A stretch of DNA of 63,577 bases, filler included, from Pelomyxa schiedti (taxonomy: Eukaryota; Protista; Evosea): NCBI GenBank assembly GCA_020536535.1. It is 3 parts of 3 records of this genome, joined end to end, with 100 filler letters (N's around TTAATTAATTAA, not from the genome) between each part and the next. Parts side by side here need not be neighbours in the genome. Positions count along the whole stretch, not along the records: positions 1 to 31,924 come from JAHLWZ010000353.1; 2 more parts are not named here. One strand, given 5' to 3'. Below, one piece after another: positions 1 to 26,392 of the stretch. Below the pieces are notes generated by a model that ran no database searches, was not told the DNA's origin, and saw only the letters and a list, made by a program, of their open reading frames with translations. The translations under genes were made by a program, and so were the position numbers. How positions within the stretch are numbered: position 1 is the stretch's first letter; each line of letters begins with the position of its first letter.

Positions 1-439
1 GCCTGTTGCACCAGCTTGTACTGCTTGGCTTGCAGATGCACAGATCCACACCCAAATGTAACTATTAGTTCTAGAGACTGCCCACACGGTAGGTACTTCT
101 TCCACAAGCTAGGCTTTTGTTTCCCCATTCCAGTGCGTAAGAAATCACCAATCTTTGAGAGTAGTTGTATTCTTCTACCTGCCCAAATGCCATTTTCTGG
201 GGGGCAGTGGATTCACTCAGCCCCCAAACAAAAATTTCTCTGCCAGCCAACACTGCAACATGTCTGCAAATATGTCAGCACATTTTCATGGACACGTTTC
301 CCTTTTTTTTTGGCTGCAGTGCCGTTGGCCACAAGAGATGTGGCTGATTTCGAGCTGGCTGATTCCCGACAGACACGGCACCAATTCTGGTCTCGGGATC
401 TGTTTCTTTTGGTACAATCGGTCACCCCCACTTGTACAT
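1..439 (-). CDS. Possible RCC1-repeat protein, 5' part only (runs off the window's left end)
   Basis: Spliced reading gives PELVPCLSGISQLEISHISCGQRHVAVLAGREIFVWG...FGQIGD, which resembles RCC1/BLIP-II repeats. The start (MYKWG) needs a one-base frameshift in a G run. Confidence 0.4.
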
Positions 440-4844: not shown

Positions 4845-7376
4845 TTACGCACTGCTGTGTGTTTCCAGCAACGATAGTGTCTCCTCATTGTCTGGTTGTG
4901 GCATTTGTGCTTGCTGAGAACTTTGTTGCTCATTTTGCTCTTCAGCACTAGATTTGGTCAGCTGCGCAGAGCTCTCTTCATGAACAGGTGAGGGTGGTCT
5001 TATGGGATCCTGAAAGTGGTTGTAAATTACATTGGAACTGCGCTGATATGTAGGATCTGTACATTTATGGTCCACCAGGTCAGGCCTGGGAGCGGTATTT
5101 GTGGGGTTCTATGCTGCAGGATAGACCCAATGACTTTAGGAGACTAAGATTAAAATGGATGGTGGATTTTGGGTACCAATGATCAGAGCACAAAATAGTG
5201 CAAGCAACATTCCAAAATAGAGATAGTTTAAGTCAGTAAACCCAGAATTTATATCACAACTGCGGAGAGTTACTTTGATAAAGGAAAATAAACCCTCACT
5301 AGTCAAAAACGAGTTCCAATGTAAATCTACATAATCCAATAAAGAGGCCAATTAGTAGAGCTGCAAGCACGGTTTTTTCAGAAACTCTTGTCGTGAAAAC
5401 TGCCGCCAGAAAAACAGCAGTTATAGGTGGAGCAAGATAATTGCTCACTGACTGAATATCTGTGGAGAAAATAAGAAAAGGGAAAATCAAAATGAATACT
5501 ACACACAGACAAAAATCTGGTCAGTTGAGGTTGAGACAAGAGGTAGCCATGCAAATGAAGTTGCAATTACAAAGAGTGTGGCTATTCTGCCTACAGTAAC
5601 GAGCTCGTGTTCTGAAGCTCTTGGGCGAGCATGTTTCCACAAATCAAGTGTGAACAGTGTTGAACAACTGCGCCATTTAAAATTAGTCTAATTAATAACT
5701 ACAGACTACCTGTTGAATACACTCGCCAGCCTAGGCATAGTTATTAAGATGCAGATATACACAGTACACACGTAGACATTAAAGCAGAAAGCATACTGGA
5801 AAGCATCACTCCCCGCAAGCCGTTTGGAAGAAGGCGCACCACCATCAAGGGATATGCTATGTCTGCTCTTTGCGACACCTCTGTGAGATTTCAGTACACA
5901 GTTCAGATAAGCATAAGATCACCCTCAGGATAAAGTGCGTAGGCAATGACACCAACAAATGACATCATGAACAGAGGTAAAATCTTTAAAAATGCGGCAC
6001 TGTGGCGGAAGTTATATAGAGAAATTACTGTGTAAGCATACCCTATTGTTCCAGCACGACCATGATCCAGGTTCTTTGCACTTAAACTATTTGAAAAAAG
6101 TAAATTAGCTTCTTTTTATGAGGAAGGTTGGATACGCTCGTTGAACCATGACTTGGTCTGCACACCAGTACCAGAGACTGCTTGCATAAACACAAAAAAC
6201 CATCCCTTTTTATATGTTAGAGGCAACGTCACACCACTCAATTTATACCAGGCCATGGGTAGTATGGGTCTGTGGCAGGCTGCAGAAGGTTAAAATATGA
6301 ATCAGGTATTCCATAGTTATTCATCAGTCCACTCATTCCACCAACCTTGGAGATATGAACCTCAAATCAAGAGCTTTCAAATACCTCCCAAAAGGCAATA
6401 GACATTAACGTCAGACCACCTGCATGGAAAAATTACTTTTATCTGTAAGTAATTACTCAAGTCATGCCAATTACAAGAGCAAATGTTTGGAATAGCTCAG
6501 TGCTTTTGATTGGAGAAATATCTGGGCCTTTAAACCACGAGAAAAGATTGGAAGTTCCTTACTATATGACAGCATTAAGACCGCCAATTACTGAATAAGC
6601 ACCAGTGCACAAGATCAAAACAAGAGAACCTAGGTACGCATTCCACCCTCCAACTTCCTGCCTGGGAAGAAACTAAAAACTACTCAATAGATTTGAAGGA
6701 GCCCTTACAGTATAATTCCACCCGAGTAAAGGGCCACAGACGTTTTAGTAAAAACGTAAATGAGCAAGGACAGGCCGGAGAGGTATAACTTGATTTTACT
6801 GCTTGCGAATCTCCGCTGTAGATATTCTGGCATTGTGCAGACTTTAGCAATCTGATACACTGGTAGAAAGAGCCAACCCAGCACTAACAGTAGTAGCCCA
6901 CCTTATGTGATAGTTATTTTGAGCTCGCCCAAATCAATATCGGAATCAAACCAGCAAGGAGTTCAAAACCAGCGGCTGCAATTCCAGTCTTTGCTCCACT
7001 CCCAGCCAGTCCCACAAAGTGTTCGGCCCCAATATTCGATGAGAAGAGGCTCGCTTTGTTTACAGTTAGTCAGTACTGTATCGCCACCACAGTTATATAT
7101 TTGAGGAGAAAGAGAAAAGAAACAAAGTAGCAGCTTATTTGATGGCGTCAAACCTCCCACAGCAAACCAAGGGATGCCCCTGCCAGCCAGAAAAAAAGTG
7201 GTCGGGTCCGTGCCCCTCTTTCTGGACGCGAAAAACGCAATTGTGGCCAGTATGAAGAAGTACACAACAATAGCCACATAGTCCAGAATATTCAGGGTCT
7301 CGCTATCCCCATTGCTCCCACTGACACTGACACTTTCCCCACTGCTGCAGGGTGTTGTCGACACTGACAGCGACAT
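4845..7376 (-). CDS. Sodium:solute symporter (SLC5, SGLT/SMIT-like), many exons
   Basis: Motifs [82 protein letters not shown]. Confidence 0.92.
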
Positions 7377-7537
7377 TGAACAAACCTGCCGATGGGGTTC
7401 TCAAACCTCGACCTGGGATGGGATACGATGGAGAAGATTATGAGAAAACCTGACTAGCTCTCTCTAGAGAGTGGCAAGAGAGTCGGTGGGGGGTTCTATT
7501 TATACCATTACAAGAGAGCGCTGTGGGTGCATGGTTG

Positions 7538-10182
7538 CTAGGGAGGCAGAGGGGCGTTTGGGTGATATTGTACTGTTTGCCCAGGGGTAAAAAGGGCAAC
7601 AGCAGGGTGGACAGAGAGCCAGGTGTTGGGAAAGCTCAAATGCGACGACCACTTTACGCGATTCAAATAAAATTGCACAGTGAAGTTCGATGTATCTACA
7701 GCAACACCCACTATTTGGCATTAGCAAGGAAATCAACTGTTGTCTTAATATACCTTTGGTCCCTTGCGAAAATTCCACTGGTTCAGGGAAAGGATGATTT
7801 CCAACACCATAGATGATGCCTTCGGAATTCCATCCAATCCCTTCTACCGCGCTAAAATTCTGCCCTGTTTGGGCCGTAACGCCATCTTTGACAATGCCTA
7901 TCATAAGGTTGCCCTTGCTGGGTTTCATAATGATTTCGACTGTTCAGATGTTATTTCATGATTAAGCGTCCTTACTTGCATACCTTCGAAGCAAGATCTT
8001 GTTCTGTAGAACACAGGTAATCCCACTAATAACTGCCAGACTGGAGTGGCACCAGTGCTCAGTTGACCCACTTTGCGAATGCACGCATTTGGCCCTGCCT
8101 CGATATCAGGTAGAAGTTGGGAAGGCCAAACAGGAACAGATGTTGAGATGGAAGTACTTCCACCGTTTCCAGTATTCTGTAGAGTTCCAATTGCAGCCCT
8201 GTTAGTTTCCAGATTAGGGTCAGGACTTCCTAGAGCAACAACTCGCATAGCACTTAGTGGGCCCATACCAGCAGAATTGAATGCTGCCACCTGAAAAGCG
8301 ACTCGCTTTCCAGTTGCATGCACTGCAGTTGAAGGAAACGGTATGAAATGGTGCTCTATATTTGTGCCGGAAAATATTTCAGTAGTAATCTCTTCTTGAG
8401 TATAGTGGGCACTCAGCCAGGCAGCAGTCTCCCCAACAGCAACCCCACCTGTGAGGGCACTCCCCCCACTTCGACGGATTGGAGCTCGTGGAGTGGGTAG
8501 AATGGTCTGAAAAATCTTATAACCAAGCACTGGCTCTTTGGAGGGGCTCCAGGAAATGAATACTGGTGCGTCAGAGGAAACAGCAGGAGGCTCAACAACT
8601 GGCCGAGGTAATTGAGGAGGGGGGCGTTGATGAATGACATGACCAATGGAGTTCAGGGCATTTGCCACACTTTCCTGTCCTGTGAGTGAGAGTGATGCAG
8701 CACTGGTAGAAGGTGATATTGAAAGCGAGCTTGGGTGAGTCTGCCCGAGAACCAGTTCGCTGCATTGAAGAGCACTCAAAACTGTAAGTGGATTGCTAGA
8801 TGTGGAAGCCCAGCGACAGTCTTCACGGCACCGTTGCAATAATGAGATTATATTGTCCAGTGAAGACATGCGAACCAGTGTAGCATCATGTCGAGCAAGT
8901 TGTATTCGTCGGCTTTCGTCAATTAACGATTGCTCCGCTGCTGTGACAAGCTTGTGCAACTCGGCTGCAGTAGAGTGAATTTTGGCTTCAATGTTGTGGT
9001 GCTCTTGTGCTAATACTTCGAGATGTTGTGAGCCTGCTGCCTGCATTAGAGAATACATTAAAGAGCATTTTGTAGAGGGAAAGTGATGTGGTTAACTAAC
9101 CTTGCCCTTCACTTGAAACAATTTTATTCTGTCCTCAAAAGAAAGGGTATTTTTCTGTAATATTCTTTGTGTAGTGGAAAGGTCTAAGAAAATTTTCGTC
9201 AAAAGAAGACAAAAAAAGAGGAAATTACATTCTTCAATTGTCGTGCACCCAACACACTTTTTATGCTCTCCAAGGGCAGAGCAACAGGGACAATACAATT
9301 CGCAATGCTCCTTAATGGCAATGTGTTGTGTGTTGCAGAGGGAAGAAAATGTACCTTGCAGAAGCCAACAACTTCTAAAGAATGCTTATGACACAAAATT
9401 GTCGTGCTCATATCTGATAGAGGTACTTTTGTGTGGGTGCGCATAGCCTGGGCCGAGTGCTGCGACCCAAAGCACATTCGACAAAAGGCAAGGTTACATT
9501 CAAGGCACCTGGATTTGTTCAAGAGTTGAGTTGGTAAAGCAAGCCAAAATGTGACTCAAATCTGTTGTTGGTTGTTGGTCCTTTCGCTTCTAAATAGTAC
9601 AAAATTTACCCAATATGTGCTGGGCGACTGCACTTTGTGCAAGGAGGCACCACTGTGGCTTGTTTCTTTTTATCGATAAACTCTTTTAATGTAGTGTTGG
9701 AGGGCAATGAAGTTGCACCATCTGCTCTAATCATGAGTAAGAAACATTGAAGGGACTGCCTGCATGTCCATAATACCTGGTGACAGTTGTGGGCTCGCCA
9801 CAGGTAGGACAAATAAGCTGTATAAGATGAGAATTTTCTTCAGTAGATACAGTTCCCCAGCGAATTCCATTTCCAGCATTCACAGGTGTCCATCCTCCGC
9901 CCTAGTTAAAAAAATATCAAGGCAAAAACAAAACAAAAAAAAAAAAAAAAAACGTGTTAGTACGGTAGTTATTTCGTTGGCTAAAGTACGCTTAAAATTG
10001 AGCAAGAAGCTAATGCTTGTGCGCACTGAGAACAAGTATTGTGACCACAAGCCAACACGACCGGGTCGTCAAAAACACGCCCGCACATCTTGCAGTTCCA
10101 GTCATCTACACAAACGTTTAGAATCTCTCTTTACGCAAGATCTACCGCTGTATCGCTCACCTGGCGTAGTTGTCGATGCCAT
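7538..10182 (-). CDS. TRIM-like protein: RING, 2 B-boxes, coiled coil, FN3, SPRY
   Basis: RING CKMCGRVFDDPVVLACGHNTCSQC; B-boxes CLECNLAFCRMCFGSQH and CHKH..YCPCC; helical region; FN3 ISWSP..GYKI..FQVAAFNSAGMGPLS; SPRY GNLMIGIV..VGVAVDT..VQFYLN..VHPAVAL. Confidence 0.8.
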
Positions 10183-12642: not shown

Positions 12643-14755
12643 ATGCAACCGACCCCAACTACCACTACCGCCCAGAAACCACGAGGTCCCCCGCCGCCTC
12701 CCCCATCACATAGTCTCAAGCCCGCGGCCCCCAAGCCACGGTCCCTCACGCCTCCCCCCTCTCGCTCCCTGCCGCCCCCGCCTCCCCCTGCCGCCGCCGT
12801 CGCCCCACCCCCTCCCTCTCGCGGGGCCCTCCCCCCGCCCCCGCCCCCCTCGCTCCCGTCCTCTGCCAGCACATCTGCATCCACATCCACATCCGCAGGC
12901 ACGCCCGCCGCAGCCCCTCCTGCCATCCTCGTCACCCTCCCGGGGCTGTCCTCTCCGCCGCCGCCCACGCCGCCGTCGGCCGCGGCCACATCGTCCGCCG
13001 CGGCTTTGGCCCCCCCTGCATCGCGGCCCAGGAGTAAATCAGACGAGGGGAAGCACCACGTGGGTGGGTGGAAGGAGCGTGCCATGGAGACCTGCTCCAA
13101 GTTGAAGGTTCCTTCCACTTTCCCCAAATTTATGTAAGTGAACCTGATGCCCACGCCATAGTCTGGAGTGAAGGATATTACACATTCTGTAAAGGAGGAC
13201 TTGCAGGTGAATCCTTCCCTGGGCCGTTTTTTTTTTTTTTCTTCTCCTTCTGATGGCATGTTGCTGTTCCTTGATTGACTAATCGCGTTTTAAGGTTGTG
13301 CTTGATGGGGAACCCCGTGAGCGCCAAATGCCTGATGGGACACGTGTTATAGTCTATCCTCTCCTACCTGCCTTACTCTTTGGCACGCCAACAGTACCGG
13401 GATCGTTGAACTTAAATGAAGATTACGAAGGATACGACGATGTACTACTCTCTTGTAATGCTTTTAAGTCATTGAGAGCGCGGAATTAATTGTTATCTAT
13501 TCTATAGCGGCATCACAAGCCATCAACTGAATGGCAATCTGTCACCCCTGGTCCACCACCACCTCCTAACGTGCAATTCCTTGCGCTAGATTCTGCCACT
13601 AGAGCGCTTCCTAATGTTTCCACAATACCAGAGCTTGTCAATGCATTACAGTCCACCATCACACATTCAACAACTTCCGCAGCTGCCGCCTCAGACCAAT
13701 GGCAACTCTTGCGTGCTATCTATGTGTGGGTAGCTGAGAATATAACATATGATGTGGACGCCTACCGGACTGGAACTCGACTGCCTTGTGACCCACAATC
13801 AGTTTTTTCCATGCGCAAAGGTGTCTGCCAAGGCATTTCCAACTTGACTGTGAAGTTATGCGTGCTTTGTGGGATCCATGCTCGTGTAGTATTAGGCTGG
13901 GGCAAAGGTGCTGGGTATCAGGAAGGTCAACAGTTGGGACAACCAAACCACGCCTGGGTTCTTGCTCGAATTCCAGGAAGTGGTGACTACTTACTTGATG
14001 TAGCTTGGGCTGCTGGGGCATGTGATGCCACACTTACCCGCTTTATTAAGCAATTTTCCGCATGCTGGTTTGGGACAGATCCTTCTCTCTTTGCACTTAC
14101 GCATTTGCCTCATCCACCTCACACCCGATTTGCCTTGCTCCCAAATGCGGAACTTCCCTCTTGTACGACTTTCGAATCCGCGAAATTCTACCCAACCGGG
14201 TTCATACAACGACTAGTTGATTCTGGATTCCCACAACGCTCGTTGGCAACACTGGCTACATCCAGGGGAGCAAGCACTGGTGTGGCAAAACTACCCGACC
14301 CCAGTAATTTGGATAGAATTGTCAGACTGGGGTATATATTTTGGATCACATCTTCCACCGTTACTCATCTCAAAACCACAGATTCTCCCCAGATGAGATT
14401 GTAAATATCTCTCTTGCCGGTGGGGACCTGGTTCATGCCTATGACACAGACCCCGGAGTTTCTATATCTGTATTACAAGCACCTCTTACCCATATTATAA
14501 AGAGAGGCACCTCCCATATCATAAGGATAAAATCCAACACAGAAATGGGAGTCGCCTTCGAGATTGGTGGCAAATGGACACACTTAGCAAAGGTACCTCT
14601 CGATTTCACAGTTTCATTTGTGTTCTAACTTCGTCCTTCAGAAAGGTACAACTTTTGAGGCAGAGTTGCAAGCTACAAAGGATGGAAAAGTTGGACTCCT
14701 ATGTAGCAAAGACCTTAGAAATTTTCAATGTATCTTGGAATGGGTGGTTGTGTAA
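12643..14755 (+). CDS. Transglutaminase-like protein (kyphoscoliosis peptidase/Cyk3-type) with Pro-rich N-terminus
   Basis: RAIYVWVAENITYD, KGVCQGISNL (Cys), NHAWV (His), LLDVAWAAG (Asp) catalytic triad; poly-Pro first exon. Confidence 0.85.
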
Positions 14756-14915: not shown

Positions 14916-16089
14916 TCAGCAACATCCCTTGGACTCTGTCTTTGTTGTAAGGTCCACAGAATCAGGAGCTGGACCCCCCCGAATTGGAGGATTGTCTGTG
15001 GTGGTGGTAGGAGTCTCCGGGCTGGATAAAAATTAATTGTGGCCAGTACTGCCGGCTCTACTCACTTGACTTGAATGCCTTGGAATATCAGCTGAGCTGT
15101 GCGAAGGAAACTTTCCTCAACATTTGATCCCCTGATTAAAAGAAAGAAGGAATTGAGAAGTAGAATGGGGGAAAAAAATTCTCACGTTTTAGCACTTGTT
15201 TCTGTGAATTGAAGACCTATCAAGGAAACCGTCATTTATTTGAAAATTAGGCACTCATATAAATTTGTTTTGTTAAAAAAAAAAAAAAACCGTGTTGATC
15301 AGCAAACTCCTTTGCTTCCGCGTAGGTTACCTCTCTCTGGTCTTCTAAATCACTCTTCGAACCAATGAGCATAATCACTGTGCTAGCACTCGTAAGGTTG
15401 CGTGCATCAGTTAACCAGCTTGTCAGGTGGTTGAATGTAACTCGCCTGGAAGTTAGAAGTTAGGAGACTCTACTAACTGTGATGTCTAAGATCACCTGCT
15501 AATATCATAACACAAAAGAGCACCTTGTTTTAAATTAATGCAAATAGGTGGAAAAAAGCTATTTACCAGCCGCGCCTCTGTAGTAGGACCGGCACACAGC
15601 ACTGTAAAAAGAATAAACAAGAATAAAGGGTAGACTAAAAGTGCCACAAACCGGAATCTCTCTTGGCCAGCTGTGTCCTGAGATGGAATTAGATTAGGAG
15701 CCTTTTTGGGTTTCCTCCAAGCCCACATACCCAAATTTGTAATTTCACTTTTTTGCTGTTAACTTCTATTATTCTGGTGCCAAATTCCACGCCAATAGTG
15801 TGAGGGCAATCAGAAATAACTATACACGTGCTGGTAAGTGGTAATAATATACACATGGGTTTGAGAACATTTTTTTTCAGTGAATTGATGCAATAAGCAA
15901 CTTTTTCCCACACCAGTGTCACCTTAAAAACCGTGAATAAGCACGAACTTCGAACTCGCGTCTTTAAAAACTCGGTTTCTCGTGGGGGAAAAAATACGAC
16001 AATGGCATGCCTATGATGATATATTTGAAGATGTATTCATACGGCAGAGACGACGATGTTGCGGTTGTTGTGCCTCCTGTCTTCGCCAT
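14916..16089 (-). CDS. RAB14: Rab GTPase, Rab14-like, about 10 exons
   Basis: [60 protein letters not shown]-terminal GCC prenylation site. Confidence 0.9.
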
Positions 16090-19164: not shown

Positions 19165-21622
19165 TTAGAGTGGACAATGAGCGTCGACTGCACAGGCATA
19201 CAACTCCTATGAGAGGTGGTGAGGATGGGGTGGACTTAGACGAGATAAAAACCTTGGTGCAGAGACAGAAGTCACTGGTTTGGTGCATGGATGAGAGGCA
19301 CACCGGGTACTGATTGCGGCAAGCAGTTTGCTCGGCGGAGTCACATGTGGGAGTGACAACGGATGATTCATCGGGTACATCGGTACCTTAGTTACGAGAT
19401 AAGTGCAACGTAATAGGAGGAGAGCCACATACTTGGACAGGCATCAGAAAAAAGGGTATTATAGACTGCAGCAATCATCTGGTGATGGGTATCCAAATCC
19501 ATTGCCCAAAACATTGCACCGCCAAGCTGTTTCTGGCAAAGGTAGAGGGTCTTAGTATGGTGTGTATCCAAAGTGTCATAGGTGACAAATTGATTCCCCT
19601 TGAATGCAAATGCAGTCTGATTGTCGTAAGGTCATTGAACGAGATTGAGAAACATCTCACCGTAGTACTGCTGTCAACTGCTGAAGTTGCTCCACCTTTT
19701 ACAAACGCATCTATTTCAAAGGAGGAAAGGAAACCACCTTTGGAGGTGATGAGCAAAAAGAAAAAATAAAGTATTTCCAACCTTCTTGTGTACAGACACC
19801 TGCAGTTCCTGGACCTATGGCGGCAGCCCCGTACCGTGTGGCGGAGGTGCTACTTTGCGCTAATGTCCTACGAAAAACCGTCAGTAAGACAGAAAGGAAA
19901 CATTTTGACATACCAGGTGCGACCATAGGCAGCCAATCCAAGAATAAGTTTCTCTGAGGGAACCCCTGCACTCAAGTACAACTAGGTGTAAATTGTATTA
20001 GAATTAGAGAAACTTGCTGTAACGGTCTACTTGAACTGCATGGTCAATTGATAAGCCGTCGGTGGAATGAAGAGCGGTATGTGGCCCCACCACATTGTCC
20101 CAGGATCCCTGCATTTAGGTTAGGCTTTAAGTGGATCAAGAGTGTATGGTACATGTAGATCATAAGTCATGAGATTTATCCAGTCCACTTAGGCAAAAAA
20201 AAAAAATTTAGCATGGCCAAAAAGGCTAAGTCATACAGTATTGGTGGAACTGGTTCACTTGTAACAATTGAATCTTAGCTTCTCCGGCAGGAGCAGCGAT
20301 CGTAAGCAATAGTTTGTTAGCTGCATGCTCAGCGTCAATTGCAGCTCGTAACTCCTTCAATAACCTGAGAATGGGGTAGCACATATCGAATTAATGGAGG
20401 GATACACACAGAGTGAAGTTTGGGGTGTCCTGAGGCCGCCCACCTTGGTCAGGGAAAGCAGGATACTCCCAATCAATATCAATTCCTTTTTGATGTGAAA
20501 ATTGAATTGAATTTAGTGAAGTGCTGAAACCATCAAATCCGTGATCCCTGGCATATTTAATAGCGCTTTGGATGAAGACTTGTCTGTTTGAACTTGTTTC
20601 TGCCATTGAGCTGAAGTAGTGCTTGGTGGGTTCATTGTAGTTGAAGTTCCAACCACCAATGCTTATAAGAGTCTTGAGTGCAGGATATTGTGTCTACTTG
20701 CAGGTTTACTTGAGAAAGAAAGGAAATGAACTATAAACCTTTAAAGCCTGGATTTGGGTGTAAAAATCGAAGTCGTCCCATTCGTAGTTAGTGACAGTGA
20801 ACTGCGGTGTAATCACTGCAAACGCCTGTATATACTTAAGAAGATGTGGGAAAAAAGTGGCATACATAGTTGATGTGGGTGATATGAGAAGCATCAACAT
20901 TACTTGGAGTATACCGGCAGGGATAGCCATTCAAATTTCTGAATCTCGTTGGTATAATGGCACTAAAGTAAAAACATACGCAGTATGGTACTGGGGCCAA
21001 TTGGTAAAGTACGCCACCAATTTCTTATCGCCAGAAGGAGTAACTGGGGTAGGTGCAACAGAAGAGTCTCCAGTGGAAGGTTCAGGCACTACCGACGATT
21101 CTACAGGGATAACTGAGCCACTCCATACAGAGCCAGCCGCCCCTATGATTAGGGTTAGTTTAGAGAACTTGTAGCGCTCGGAATACCTTGGCAATCACTT
21201 GGGGGAGACGCTGAGGGCCTAAACCGTGATTCAGAAAAAAAAGGAGGGAAAATAGCATGTTGCAAACCAATTGCAGGGACTGGATGTAGTACTGCCACAC
21301 TGGCAAACTGTGCCACTTGCACAAGCATTCATGGTAGGAGTAACGCTGCCGTAGCACCACGCATACTGCAGGAAAACTGTGTAAGAGATCTCGCAAAAAA
21401 AAAAAAAAAAAAAAAAAAACCTATCACATAAAACGAGTATCGTGTAGTGCAACAGTGTTGCGAAGTGGAATAAAAGATGACAAACAAAAGAAAAAACAAG
21501 TTACGTGCCCTCGATGAGTCGAGACAGTAGAAACCAGTAGCGAGACCACTACAATCAGTTCGATCGCAATAGCTGAGCGAACACAGTATCGCAAATACAC
21601 CGGCAATCGCAAGTGACCGCAT
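19165..21622 (-). CDS. Secreted GH18 chitinase with N- and C-terminal Cys-rich modules
   Basis: Signal peptide, Cys-rich N-domain, S/T/P linker, [27 protein letters not shown] (DxDxE), [23 protein letters not shown]. Confidence 0.93.
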
Positions 21623-21939
21623 GTTGCCAACAAGATCCAATGGGGAAAAAAATGAAAGTAAAGTCTGACTCGCCGCACTTGGTCCTTATAAGGACCCCTT
21701 TTTGCGACACTCGCCGAAACGCAGCATTAGCCTAACCACCTCCAAACTTTTTTCCCCTTTTGCTTTTTGCCCAAGTTGGATGGTGGGGCAAGAAAAAAGT
21801 AGATCCACCATCAGCCTATCTGCAAGGCTTCGCGTGAGAGATAAGGTTGCAAGAGTGTTCTGCTGCGCTGTGACCGAACCTGCCCCAAGGCATTTTTTGT
21901 TTAAACGAAACGGCTCAAGGTTAGCTTTTTAGAAACCCA

Positions 21940-22972
21940 ATGGAGTACGAGCACGCGCCGTTGTTGAGTGAAGGTGGTGAGACACCAACAGCAACTGCTA
22001 CTGCCGCCAGTGCAGGAGCTCCTACAGTTCCTGATAAGGAAAGACGTGCTCTGGAGTATTACACTGGTGGGCCCGCCTTTCACTTTTTTCCCCCCATTTG
22101 CGTTATGTCCAATCGGGATGTTAATTATAGTTGTGTGGTGTGGCACATTTTTTTTTTTTGTTTGTGTGTGTGTTTCTTTTTTGTTTGACCTGTATTTTGT
22201 AATAATAACACCAAGGGCACGAGAAAACACTGCACTGGGCAGTATGTATCCTAAACTGAAACTTCTCGTTCACACTAACATTTTGGTGTTGCCTAGTTTC
22301 TGGGCTGCGTTTTGTTCAACTTTCTGGATTTTTTAGCGAATATAGTGATTGCAGTTTTGGCTCTTGCTGTAATTCTAATGAGGTCAGACGCTGACCCACA
22401 ATATACCTGTGACAGCGACGCTGTATACCCTTATCTCATTGTCACTGTAATTATGTACTATACTAAGTAAATATTGCACTCTTACGTTACCTTGCAGCTA
22501 TATTATTATGGGCTTGATAAATCTATGGCAGACCATCTTTGTTTTCACGGAGAGAGGGAAACTTCTCGCTGAAGTGAGAAGAGGAGTTGCACCACGAGGG
22601 AAATGCAAGCTTTTTGGCTTCATAATTGGTGCACTGAACCCAACAAACTTGATCCTCACCATTATAGCCACGGTGTTTTTGGGCAAGGGGTGCTATGGTG
22701 AAGACGGTGAAAAGAGCCTCACTGTTATGAAGCTCACAGTGATAGGAATGTGGGGAGAATTTATCTTCTCACAAATCATTACCATGACAGTTCTTATCTA
22801 CCGAATGCCAGTTTTGATGCTTTACGCTCCATCCGTTCGCCTGGATATGCCCCTCAACGATGTGTGTCAATACTCAATCCAGCATTACCTTACTAACACT
22901 TCCATAAAAACCAATACACAGTTATACCACGCAGTACAAAACAAACTCGACCAAAAATTTGGTGCACATTAA
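21940..22972 (+). CDS. Multi-pass membrane hypothetical protein, multi-exon
   Basis: MEYEHAPLL N-terminus and several hydrophobic segments in spliced exons; no family recognised. Confidence 0.55.
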
Positions 22973-23044
22973 TTTTGCTTTCCACTTGTCACGTTGCTTT
23001 CCCCTTGCAATCTTTTCGTTTCTTTGCCTTCAAAATTTGAACTG

Positions 23045-23052
23045 TCCCATAA
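23045..23052 (+). promoter_or_regulatory. DUSE-like snRNA upstream element TCCCATAA
   Basis: Matches the Dictyostelium upstream sequence element consensus WCCCAYAA and lies 62 nt upstream of the U1 5' end. Confidence 0.65.
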
Positions 23053-23106
23053 TTCCGGGGGAAAAACCCCGAGGCTTGTGCGCGAAAGGGAAGGAGAAAG
23101 TTCTTC

Positions 23107-23265
23107 ATACATACCTGGTTGTACACACCGTTGATCAATGAGGACTGGTGTGTTGTCGTTGCCTTTGAGCTTGCACTCTCTCAGGGACGCGGCATGGATC
23201 TCCGAAAGGAGAGCCCAGCAACGTAATTTTTGTTGAGCTGGAGTCTGCGTCTCGTGCGCGACTCC
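23107..23265 (+). ncRNA. U1: U1 spliceosomal snRNA with variant 5' arm (AUACAUACCUG)
   Basis: 5' ATACATACCTG; helix H GTTG/CAAC; SL1 ACACACC-GTT/GAC-GGTGTGT with loop GATCAATGAG (U1-70K site); SL2 with loop CTTGCACTCT (U1A site); SL3 TCTCC-GAAA-GGAGA; Sm site AATTTTTG at 23225-23232; SL4 GGAGTC...GACTCC; about 160 nt. Confidence 0.92.
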
Positions 23266-23373
23266 TTTTTAAGAAAGAAAAAAGAACGAAGAGGCAAAAA
23301 CAGAGGCAGGGGATTGTTGTCTTTGGGTTTCTGTCCTTGTTTTCCCTTACAAAAAGCAACTTTTCAAACGAAA

Positions 23374-26300
23374 ATGAGTAGGGACGTAGTGCACGATCTC
23401 ATTATTTACAACGCGAGGGTGTGGACAGGGGACCGCTTGGTGCCGAGTGCGTGGGCAGTTGGTGTGCGTGAAAGCCGGATCTCAGCTCTATGGGAAGATC
23501 CCGACGTCACTTGGGTGTGCGGTCCAAACGCCGTAACTACGACTGTTACGAGCACAGTTGCGGCCGGTGCGGGTGCTTCGCGGCGCGGTGAGTTTGTCGA
23601 GGAATTGAAGAAAAGAGCGTGGTTTACAGTGGACGCGTGTGGTGGCACTTTGATGCCGGGGTTTAATGACACACACGTGCACTACGAGCCACCTTCGTTT
23701 GTTCTACCTTGGACTGACGCCGCTGGAATTCGTGATCGCCAACAACTTAGTATGCTTTTTTTTCCCGCTTCCCTCCGAGTTTTGGCGACGCTTCCTCTTT
23801 GCCATAGTAAGTCTCTTTTCTCATTTTTCCAGGTGAATTGGCTCATACCGTGGCCGAGGAATCTGATTTTGGAACTGGTTGGATTGTTCTTCGAAATGTA
23901 CCTCACGATGTGGCCCCCACATCTCTCGCGGAAATTGACTCGTTTCTTCCCTCTACAAGGATTCCTTTGGTTCTTGTTTTCCAGAACGAACAGTTGAGCT
24001 TCCTTGGCTAGAAATACATTATCTCTCTCTCACACAAGTTTTACTTAGTTGTGGAATGGCCAACACAGCTGCACTCAGATGTGCGAAACTGCTTGGTCGA
24101 GGTTTTCCTCTTGAACTCCGTGGTGCGGCACTCGATGCTATACTTGCCTGTGTTGTAGATCCCCCGGCATCTCTTCTACGTCAATTCGCGAAATTAGGAA
24201 TCACTTCCATCCAGCTAATGGGCCACTCTTCAGAGAAGACTGCAATAATGGCGTCAATGGCTGATCAGGGACGAATACCACTGAGGATTGCAGTTGCCTT
24301 GGATAAAACTTCATTTGTATCTGGGGCACACAATTCTCTGCCTCGCAGTGCAGATGCTCGAGTCAGAGTTATGGCTCTGAAATTATATGCTGATCATCTC
24401 GTTGATGGAGACACTGCATGGAGATTGCCTTACTTTGGTCCTAGTGTTGTAGAAACCTGGGGGGCACACACCCTTGCCTATGATGCCGGTGTGGGTGGGA
24501 TTGGAGGAAGTAAATTCTCAGATGTTGATACGGAACATAAAGATGTGTCAACGAAAGCAAAGCACGCTTTTTACTCTGTGGACGAATTGACCACATGGAT
24601 AGAACGGGCAGAAGCAGCAGGCCTTCAGGTGTGCATCCATGCAACTGGAGATGGGGCAGTACGTGGTATATTAGATGCTGTAGAGACAGTGACAAAGAAG
24701 AAAAGAAACCAACTTCCATCACTGTGTAGACATCGTATTGAGCACGCTGAGTTAATTCACCCTGAAGATGTTCCACGCTTCGGTTCCATTGGAGTTCTTG
24801 CCTCCATGTCCCCGCTGCACGCTCCCTCCCAATACTGGAACAGTGATTGCGGATACCTAAAACATGTACACCCAGGACTTTGGGATACCCGCGGATTTGT
24901 GTGGCAGAATTTAATTCAAACAAACGGCAGAGTTCCATTGAGCACTGACTATCCCGTTGTTCAAGCAAATCCTCTGTGCACAGTGCACGCTGCAATTTCT
25001 AGGGTACCATATATCAAAGGGGGGCCGTCTCAGGCTTTCACTCTGGAAAACGCGTTGAAGGGGTACACAGCAGAACCAGCCTATGCGGAATTTCAAGAAA
25101 CTCGGAAAGGAACTTTGACCGAAGGGATGCTAGCTGATTTTACCTTGCTATCAACTGATATCTTGGCTTTTCGAAACGATAGGGAACAAGCTATGGCTGC
25201 CCTACTAAAATCCGTGGTAAATATGACAGTATGTGATGGACACATTACTTTCTTGTCTCCCTCGATTGAGCTTCAAGCACTGGTGATTGTTCCTCCAGCA
25301 CCTGTGCCACCTCGCCCTCGCGCCAGGCTTTCAAATCCTTCCCATCCTTCTGTGGAATTTAGAGTTCGCAATGCTACCACTCCTGCTGATATCCGTACAA
25401 TCGCATTAGTTATGGCGAAGGCAGCACTGTGCAACCCTGGTTTGAATGACTGGAATGCATTCGGGTGTGTAGATCCAGCAGGGTGGTACATTGGCGAACT
25501 GGTGAAACCACAATCAACTGTAGCACCCAGTATGGTGGCTTGCATCGGGGCAATGGTGTGGACAGAGTCATATGCTTATATTGGGCATGATCACTGCAGT
25601 AGACATCACCAAGGAAAGGGGTACGAAGCCCTAATGTGGCATACTGGAATGAGCCATATCCTTGACCGATGCAATAATTCCAACGCCTGTGTTGCTACTG
25701 ATATCGATCCTGAAGAAGAGGCCGAATTGCATTATCTGGGATTTAAACCCAGCTATAGGAGCACAAGGTTAGTTGCCTCCCTGCAGTCTCCAAGGATTGT
25801 ACCTGAAATTGTTGTGCTAAAGCACCCCACCACGGAGGCCGACACAGAAGTCGTAGCCAATTATACAGCAACACTAAACTCTATGGCCGAACTCTTTGTA
25901 GAATACACGGGAGTGAACAGACCCGATTTTGCGAAAGCCTGGTTCACGCAACCTAGTGCTTTTACTTGTGCCTATAGATCACCTACAACTGGCAAACTAC
26001 TGAGTGTTGGTGTACTTAGGCCTTCAGCAGGTGGTTATCGTGTTGGTCCCCTGTTTGTCTGCCGAAATACCTTGGAATTGCATACTGAGGCAGCTGCACA
26101 ATGCGTGCTACACCATACCATCCAGGCCCTTGCTACATTTGCCATTGCTCCAAAACCAAAACCCAAGGTACTTATACCAGAAAGTGAGCCAAGTTCCGCG
26201 GCAGTGACTTCAGTGAACGTTACATCGGCTCTTGCCATAGACGTTCCAGACACCAACTCGTGGGCATTCAGAGAACTTACCAACATGGGATTTGCCCAAA

Positions 26301-26392
26301 TGTGGGTTTCGTTACGAATGACAACAACCACATTCACAGGAGCCAACCTGGATTGCACTTGTGGCCTCGTTTCTTGGGAAGTTGGACCTTGA
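23374..26392 (+). CDS. YtcJ-like metal-dependent amidohydrolase (Amidohydro_3) fused to a YitH-like GNAT acetyltransferase, 3 exons
   Basis: DACGGTLMPGFNDTHVH, IHATGD, RHRIEHAE, STDYPV, KGTLTEGMLADF; C-terminal DPAGWYIG..AYIG..QGKGY..YRVGPL..IDVPDTN..WEVG; first intron donor at 23750. Confidence 0.85.

Follow-up and report, generated by a model that had tools for sequence, protein, structure and literature searches.

We analysed a stretch of DNA of 63,577 nucleotides, filler included, from the archamoeba Pelomyxa schiedti (assembly GCA_020536535.1), called the window throughout, and examined a gene for the U1 small nuclear RNA (snRNA) that lies on its plus strand. The gene is located in the part taken from contig JAHLWZ010000353.1 (C353; positions 1-31924), in which U1 (RF00003) was the sole Rfam family above its gathering score (Rfam cmscan). 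The match at 23107-23268 (+) covers model positions 1-166 of 166, the full length of the model, and scores 71.2 bits compared to a cut-off of 69.5 (E 6e-16). U11 or another member of the same Rfam clan was ruled out, as clan competition keeps U1 and both the U1-70K and the U1A loops are present. The U1 hallmarks, namely helix H, stem-loops 1 to 3 (SL1-SL3), the Sm site and SL4, were found to be complete and to follow one another in the order that a sequence-only reading of this DNA had given (Table 1).

The arm ACUUAC, with which U1 recognises the 5' splice site, is among the most conserved RNA sequences of eukaryotes. In the duplex with the donor, U1 C8 and A7 pair with +1G and +2U of the intron, U6 pairs with +3, position 5 with +4, C4 with +5, and A3 with +6. 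The 5' end of the window gene reads ATACATACCTGG (first bases AUACAUACCUG; predicted RNA start AUACAUACCUGG). It was noted that ten of its 11 arm bases match canonical AUACUUACCUG, the exception being position 5 (window 23111), where A stands in place of the near-universal U. This is the substitution claimed by the sequence-only reading, and both the Rfam match and the 5' end uphold it. The A5 of the window arm is complementary to the commonest +4 base among the donors (U, 39%). DNA contigs of two runs (X1 and X2) over 23018-24999 show no mismatch at 23111; since these runs are probably the source data of the assembly, their agreement excludes a consensus error but is not an independent confirmation. 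The runs in which the window is found comprise a DNA sample of 2021 and, from the same study, SMART-type transcriptomes of single cells.

Through a genome-wide Rfam search of the assembly (52,367,397 bases in 5337 contigs), which recovered the same locus, we found 25 U1 loci whose 5' ends fall into three arm classes. Canonical ACUUAC genes and modified ACAUAC genes coexist in this genome, and two further genes carry an ACGUAC arm. The RNA 5' ends predicted from the genes are AUACUUAC in the canonical class, AUACAUAC in the A class, and AUACGUAC in the G class, with a gene dosage of approximately 8:10:2. A5 was present in 14 loci, comprising the window copy and 13 others, with diverged bodies, and the Rfam scores of the A-class genes (72-79 bits) overlap those of the canonical genes (70-83 bits). 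A literal pattern search with positions 5 and 6 left open returned the same 23 loci and nothing else. Neither a C5 arm nor an A6 arm was found in the assembly by these literal patterns, and position 6 was U in all 23 loci. The genome also encodes an exon for the U1C zinc finger (74.8 bits) and one for the U1-70K N-domain.

Five of the U1 copies are degenerate. Three are of the A class, with SL3 deleted and a G11A change (L021, L022, L024), while one of the T class has U2A, G11A and a partly deleted SL3 (L025). The fifth (L023; C22:72485-72641 (-); 53.9 bits), paired with the A-class gene L003, possesses a canonical-clade body but an A5 arm with G11U; it may represent an independent switch, a conversion of the arm, or a copy in decay. 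C1151 holds two identical inverted copies of ~139 nt (13912-14050 (+) and 15335-15473 (-)), separated by 1.3 kb, both without SL3 and with the G11>A change; they may stem from a chimera formed during amplification. On C918, the short A-class copy and its T-class partner (64-202 (-) and 246-385 (+)) have both lost SL3 and changed G11>A.

A maximum-likelihood tree was computed on the U1 body alone, with the arm removed. Two deep clades match the canonical and A arm classes, and the G class is nested inside A. Within the A clade, the window copy (L017) takes a basal position. Mean body identity is 0.70 within T, 0.73 within A and 0.52 between T and A, and the pooled within-class identities of T and A range from 0.59 to 0.92. 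Within the intact copies of both T and A, none of the 11 arm columns is variable, compared to 88 of 150 body columns in T and 88 of 144 in A (Fisher exact test; p = 1e-4 and p = 6e-5, respectively). From the 20 intact copies, RNAalifold recovered the U1 fold with 37 pairs, 31 of which have double compensatory changes, and these changes span helix H and all four stem-loops.

Helix H (RNAalifold columns 12-15 with 120-123) is GUAC/GUAC in T, ACUG/CAGU in A and G, and GUUG/CAAC in the window copy, which thus differs from its class by two compensated pairs. The SL1 loop GAUCAnnnAGG is invariant in all copies, on a stem with many double compensatory changes, and the SL2 loop TTGCACTC (UUGCAC, U1A) is kept across classes while its stem covaries. 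The combination of compensated stems, an invariant arm and diverged bodies indicates functional RNA genes rather than pseudogenes. The A at position 5 is not a chance occurrence, as shown by the 13 further copies and by its invariance across an old gene clade.

The U1 genes are also physically linked. It was noted that 18 of the 25 loci form nine head-to-head pairs (C455, C448, C290, C966, C171, C716, C1082, C22, and C918), each consisting of one gene with a T body and one with an A body. The spacer measures 132-152 bp in eight pairs and 43 bp in the degenerate pair on C918, and both members have been kept in eight of the nine pairs. The T partners and the A partners show mirrored branching orders, and the pair was therefore duplicated as a unit. 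The partners of a pair are only ~52% identical and are therefore not inverted duplicates; the idea that the pairs arose as amplification chimeras was rejected on the same ground. Unpaired genes include two of the G class, one canonical gene and two of the A class. The window copy belongs to the unpaired genes and lies ~130 bp downstream of a protein-coding gene; RNA contigs cover the 3' part of that gene.

A box of the form CCCA(T/C)AA(T/C/G) starts at -59 to -63 in 23 of the 23 copies with enough upstream sequence, and it is found in all three classes. In paired loci there are two such boxes, which face opposite ways. The 3' end of every U1 copy is followed by an A-rich tract. The CCCAYAAT box at about -61 is a putative snRNA promoter element. 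The shared divergent spacer with its symmetric boxes argues for joint, rather than alternative, expression of the canonical and A genes. A panel of U1 variants, which was one of two possibilities raised by the sequence-only reading, is thus borne out at the level of the genes by the three arms, deep clades, linked pairs, invariant arms, compensated stems and shared box, and the panel extends beyond what that reading had guessed; the variants may, as it also proposed, be specialised for donor classes.

Table 1. Parts of the U1 locus and nearby introns in the window, arm classes of the intact U1 genes of Pelomyxa schiedti, and environmental U1 genes with variant arms. Positions given with no locus name are window positions.
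Feature	Location	Strand	Details
Promoter-like box CCCATAAT, resembling a proximal sequence element (PSE-like)	23046-23053	+	Box start at -61 relative to the first base of U1
5' splice-site recognition arm ATACATACCTG	23107-23117	+	A at 23111 is U1 position 5, facing intron +4
Helix H, 5' strand GTTG	23118-23121	+	Pairs with CAAC at 23219-23222
SL1	23122-23153	+	U1-70K-type loop GATCAATGAGG at 23133-23143; Rfam alignment
SL2	23154-23195	+	U1A-type loop CTTGCACTC at 23170-23178; Rfam alignment
SL3	23196-23216	+	GGATCTCC GAAA GGAGAGCCC
Helix H, 3' strand CAAC	23219-23222	+	Partner of GTTG at 23118-23121
Sm site AATTTTTG	23225-23232	+	AAUUUnUG common to all classes
SL4	23240-23265	+	Rfam match extends to 23268
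A-rich tract	23269-23300	+	Directly 3' of the Rfam match
RNA-supported introns (n = 9)	19207-22921		44-60 nt; in neighbouring genes, not part of U1
Canonical (T) class, ACUUAC, arm ATACTTACCTG	L001, L004, L007, L009, L015, L016, L018, L019		8 intact genes
A class, ACAUAC, arm ATACATACCTG	L002, L003, L006, L008, L010-L014, L017 (window copy)		10 intact genes
G class, ACGUAC, arm ATACGTACCTG	L005, L020		2 genes
Environmental A5 U1	L047:2236-2401 (-), L051:4999-5164 (+), L093:1021-1186 (-), L096:1234-1399 (-)		One sequence type, 72.6 bits
Environmental G5 U1	L052:1638-1803 (+), L070:1960-2125 (-), L098:1584-1749 (+)		70 bits; flanked by two transfer RNA genes
Freshwater metagenome A5 U1, ACAUAC	L058:3717-3882	+	152 bits, animal-like

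The donors that these arms would read were characterized on 262 kb, comprising the window and the fetched loci L001-L045, with a purpose-written Viterbi gene finder that scores codon log-odds, intron length, intron composition, the acceptor, and the donor positions outside +3 to +6. The donor statistics were calibrated on nine RNA-supported introns near U1, taken from joints in the RNA contigs of two runs (X3, X4). The donors of this set are GTTTTT, GTATGT, GTGAGA, GTATGT, GTAGAC, GTACCA, GTATGA and GTTTCA on the minus strand and GTGTGT on the plus strand, with U at +4 in six of the nine; eight of these introns (44-49 nt) belong to one gene at 19207-20530 (-). Simple joining of open reading frames (ORFs) yielded 35,500 candidate introns, which were discarded since their lengths were evenly distributed, and a Viterbi version with a flat intron penalty recovered none of the nine known introns and was replaced by iterative training. 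The trained gene finder, with +3 to +6 unscored, recovered eight of the nine exactly, and its false calls were approximately one in nine where RNA contigs permit comparison.

In total, 764 short introns were predicted. Their lengths have a mode of 43-44 nt, and their interiors are rich in T and poor in G (T.41, C.24, A.23, G.12). Their donor profile has A.55 at -2, G.56 at -1, A.49, U.26 and G.18 at +3, U.39, A.27, C.20 and G.13 at +4, G.36 at +5, and U.43 at +6. Relative to the intron background, the information content is 0.90 bit at -1, 0.34 at +3 and 0.27 at +5, compared to 0.01 bit at +4, and the +4 distribution was stable in high-confidence intron subsets. GTATGT is the commonest donor hexamer yet accounts for just 25 of the 764 introns, with GTGTGT, GTAAGT, GTTTGT and GTGAGT close behind. 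Because the composition at +4 equals that of the intron background, there is no GUAUGU consensus and +4 is unconstrained. With the panel, 55% of the predicted donors can form at least six of nine Watson-Crick pairs, compared to 33% for the canonical arm by itself.

These figures do not support the other possibility of the sequence-only reading, in which U1 had co-evolved with a +4U consensus: canonical genes are about as numerous as ACAUAC genes, +4U stands at 39% compared to a background T of 41%, and the 764 introns hold no enrichment of +4U. The seven donor hexamers it had cited were all found where it had placed them, and those at 19432 and 19913 were confirmed by RNA; three more were predicted by the gene finder, whereas those at 15730 and 2514 were not. 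It was also noted that introns are very dense and that CTAAY-like branch motifs occur near their 3' ends. The published Pelomyxa schiedti assembly has 7.43 introns per gene (PMC8887013).

We consider the window locus to be a functional U1 gene of the old A class and a member of a fixed panel of three types (U5, A5 and G5), with a probability of roughly 0.7. Pelomyxa schiedti probably reads its loose intron starts with three U1 types. We infer that the genes are transcribed, that their RNAs are assembled into small nuclear ribonucleoproteins, and that the pairing at +4 is specific to the class. A U5 arm would pair with +4A and, by wobble, with +4G, an A5 arm with +4U, and a G5 arm with +4C and, by wobble, with +4U; together, as a constitutive panel, the three arms would be able to pair any +4 base. 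The arms present (U, A and G) are the exact set that covers the four +4 bases, and a C5 arm, which is absent, would be redundant because it would add only +4G. It would also be dispensable, since +4G is the rarest base and could already be wobble-paired by U5. The head-to-head pairs, in which each gene has its own box, would give joint and roughly equal expression of canonical and A genes.

The most likely history begins with an old duplication that would have given rise to the U5/A5 pair. Donors would have drifted at +4 because either base was readable, and both U1 classes would thereby have become indispensable, in a ratchet of the constructive-neutral kind; the G5 class would be a later offshoot within the A clade. 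What speaks against +4 pairing being irrelevant is that position 5 has stayed strictly invariant in each class despite long divergence. A bolder version of the panel can be put forward only tentatively and well short of an expectation. In it, the U5/A5/G5 panel would be obligate, canonical and A5 genes would be co-transcribed from shared divergent promoters, +4 would be freed from selection in ~150,000 tiny introns, and the panel would be older than the split between Archamoebae and Myxogastria, with the odd single arms of Mastigamoeba (ACGUAC) and Entamoeba (ACAAAC) and the mixed family of Physarum (ACAUAC and ACUUAC) as its various leftovers, not separate inventions.

Several results weigh against a functional panel that includes the window gene. 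No RNA contig covers 23000-24999, the libraries being solely of the poly(A)/SMART type from single cells, and the window gene is unpaired and just 1.7 bits over the Rfam cut-off. The donor statistics come from a home-made gene finder applied to 0.5% of the genome, with a precision of ~8/9. There is no preference at +4, and the same pattern would be expected if +4 pairing did not matter. The identity of +4 is not clustered by gene (p = 0.21) and +4G donors are not compensated at other positions, so the donors provide no independent signature of class-specific reading. Furthermore, the 26% of donors with U at +3 are unpaired at that position by any U1 class.

The same donor results favor an alternative in which position 5 is tolerated but functionally irrelevant, the choice of donor is made by -1G, GU, +3A, +5G, intron length and proteins such as U1C, and the classes are interchangeable old paralogues. 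Besides the 0.01 bit at +4, the lack of gene clustering and the uncompensated weak +4 matches, it can appeal to L023, a canonical-clade copy with A5, which shows that position 5 can flip. A neutral position should vary, however, and position 5 is invariant in the eight canonical and ten A intact copies, whose bodies are 59-92% identical; the sole flip occurred in a low-scoring copy with a second arm change (G11U), and U, A and G are precisely the set that covers all +4 bases, with the redundant C5 absent. We regard this alternative as unlikely. It is less probable still, and improbable in absolute terms, that the A class, or at least the unpaired window copy, consists of silent or decaying pseudogenes and that canonical U1 alone is used. 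The absence of an RNA contig over the locus and a score of 71.2 bits, barely above the 69.5 cut-off, would fit such decay, as would the clearly degenerate copies (SL3 loss and changes of G11 in L021, L022, L024 and L025). Decaying genes would not account for 31 of 37 compensated pairs, a private double compensation in helix H of the window copy, invariant SL1 and SL2 loops, arm and Sm site, a promoter-like box at the canonical distance, A-class scores that overlap canonical scores, and the retention of both members in eight of nine pairs through repeated duplication.

Differential expression, with the classes acting as isoforms that tune particular gene sets by stage, stress or cyst, would parallel the embryonic and adult U1 variants of animals or the human vU1s; differentially expressed U1 variants are known in animals, and unpaired genes (two G, one canonical, two A) could be separately regulated. 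We find this very improbable, as divergent spacers of 132-152 bp with symmetric boxes argue for joint expression and the introns of a gene do not tend to share their +4 base (p = 0.21). Co-evolution of a single U1 with a GUAUGU consensus at the donors, in the manner of Entamoeba, is hardly credible here. GTATGT is indeed the commonest hexamer (25/764) and +4U has the plurality (39%; 6/9 of the RNA-supported introns), but eight intact canonical genes coexist with, and are physically linked to, the A-class genes, and +4U matches the intron T background rather than a consensus. There is next to no likelihood of an artefact through sequencing or amplification error, chimeric assembly or contaminating eukaryotic DNA. 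The assembly was made from amplified single cells, and the identical inverted copies on C1151 could have arisen as a chimera during amplification; on the other side, A5 occurs in 14 loci whose bodies have diverged, position 23111 is the same in two DNA runs, and the window contig possesses the same tiny introns as the rest of the contigs, backed by the organism's own single-cell RNA. A contaminant was likewise rejected.

Re-coded arms have been described in relatives of Pelomyxa. Roy & Bowser (2022, bioRxiv 10.1101/2022.06.08.495308) reported a U1 candidate with an ACAAAC arm, matching GUUUGU donors, in five species of Entamoeba, and one candidate with ACGUAC, matching GUGCGC donors, in Mastigamoeba balamuthi. 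In their own searches, arms were canonical in 69-70 Saccharomycotina, Thecamonas and Mamiellales, and the preprint cites earlier reports for canonical arms in Giardia and Trichomonas; the statement of the sequence-only reading that budding yeast keeps U5 agrees with this. For Physarum polycephalum (U1 of Myslinski, Wilhelm & Branlant 1989, NAR 17:1019), the preprint notes that an ACAUAC U1 and GUAUGU donors had been reported, and indicates that standard and modified U1 variants are both present there, with full results deferred. A 2026 review treats Entamoeba as being without a U1 snRNA (PMC13292270).

The arm change itself is therefore not new, since both ACAUAC and ACGUAC arms have been reported before. 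The sequence-only reading had stated that a variant already widespread and described in relatives would count against it; this applies in part, through ACAUAC (Physarum, where standard variants also occur) and ACGUAC (Mastigamoeba balamuthi), but neither to this organism nor to this form of the system. No published work linking Pelomyxa with U1 was found in the searchable literature, and the Pelomyxa schiedti genome paper makes no mention of snRNAs (PMC8887013). As far as we know, what is new consists of the arm variants in Pelomyxa, the presence of three arms in one genome, the pairing of canonical with variant genes and their duplication as a unit, and the lack of constraint at the donor position that the arms read.

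Pelomyxa schiedti resembles Physarum polycephalum, as summarised by Roy & Bowser, in having the same ACAUAC arm in an amoebozoan, mixed with standard U1 genes. GUAUGU is said to be the commonest donor in Physarum, in contrast to the unconstrained +4 of Pelomyxa schiedti, and that summary mentions neither a G5 class nor linked divergent pairs nor pair-wise duplication. With the fellow archamoeba Mastigamoeba balamuthi it shares the ACGUAC arm of the G-class genes L005 and L020. Mastigamoeba, however, has a single candidate, a GUGCGC preference and 60.7% GC, whereas G5 is the minority of three classes here, in a genome of ~46% GC with no donor consensus at +4. The likeness to Entamoeba lies in an archamoebal U1 whose re-coded arm includes A at position 5; the differences are the single gene, the changes at both positions 5 and 6, the near-universal GUUUGU and the intron-poor genomes of Entamoeba, compared to the absence of A6 in Pelomyxa schiedti. 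A single co-evolved U1 type, as in Entamoeba and Mastigamoeba, does not describe this genome, with its three arm types and no +4 consensus.

The human U1 variants likewise form a multigene family with altered 5' arms beside canonical genes. They are heterogeneous, of low abundance and recent, with many pseudogenes, whereas the variant class of Pelomyxa schiedti is as large as the canonical class, ancient, arm-invariant, and physically paired with canonical genes. The donors of Saccharomyces and other Saccharomycotina often have U at +4, as they do here; the yeasts keep ACUUAC and tolerate the mismatch, whereas the A-class arm pairs with +4U.

Metagenome contigs were also searched for the SL1 loop preceded by an A5 or G5 arm, a scan with no denominator and no taxonomy. 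It returned 54 stretches, mostly chance matches; in eight of the 54, Rfam confirmed a U1 gene (Table 1). The protist-like A5 and G5 types come from one sample series (Ga0209914/15/30/35), and may derive from a single uncultured protist that possesses two or more variant arms. The freshwater A5 gene on L058 shares its contig with a U2 gene (906-1097), a second U1 (1-112) and a histone 3' stem-loop (1974-2019), and this U1-U2-histone cluster suggests that the contig is probably of animal origin. The confirmed environmental genes indicate that position-5 variants of U1 are not confined to cultured amoebae.

These findings bear on the question of why the U1 arm fails to track donor drift, as in yeast, Giardia and Trichomonas. 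Re-coded arms have so far been represented by one preprint, on Entamoeba and Mastigamoeba, and by Physarum, and the Entamoeba U1 was still disputed in 2026. The Pelomyxa schiedti genome supplies unambiguous archamoebal U1 genes, with three arms side by side. The variant genes are physically coupled to the canonical ones and both kinds are conserved, and the donor position that they would read is under no constraint. Two ideas thereby become testable in one organism, namely that a cell can run several U1 specificities simultaneously and that snRNA duplication can relax, rather than follow, the evolution of splice sites. If the obligate-panel version were true, it would represent natural constructive neutral evolution inside the core spliceosome. 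There is also a warning for annotation, as U1 searches and splice-site models built on one arm mis-score such genomes.

Multiple copies are not peculiar to U1 in this assembly. At least 20 U6 snRNA genes were found at 100-105 bits (e.g. C720:365-471 and C819:14908-15025), and snRNA genes are thus in general multi-copy in this genome; within the fetched loci (~262 kb), none other than those of U1 was found. The ACAGAGA box of U6 also contacts donor positions +4 to +6.

Around the window gene, several further features were noted. The gene 3' of U1 (23374-26392 (+)) encodes an Amidohydro_3 domain, with a weak C-terminal GNAT acetyltransferase match below the cut-off; it has two predicted introns, the first with the donor GTATGC at 23750, and no RNA contig lies over it. 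A look-up of its amidohydrolase ORF returned no recorded entry. At 21763-22252, an X2 contig has several substitutions and small indels that are absent from X1 (e.g. at 21763, 21920, 21994 and 22047), which could reflect allelic or cell-to-cell variation or amplification error. At 21383-21429 and 22143-22189, the contigs are interrupted by long runs of A and of T/GT.

Domain scans on single exons or ORFs in the fetched loci revealed additional genes. Pfam scans of single exons found an actin exon, and an exon at L029:3783-4595 (-) (C804:63783-64595) carries EKR and 4Fe-4S dicluster domains of the kind found in pyruvate:ferredoxin oxidoreductase; judged by these domains, it would fit an anaerobic lifestyle. 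At L028:4640-7030 (-) and 7166-8947 (+) (C804:44640-48947), we found two divergent intron-less ORFs of 797 and 594 aa, both with weak matches to the Hsp70/actin-fold ATPases and one with a C-terminal VWA domain. Long single-exon genes such as these are unusual in this intron-dense genome.

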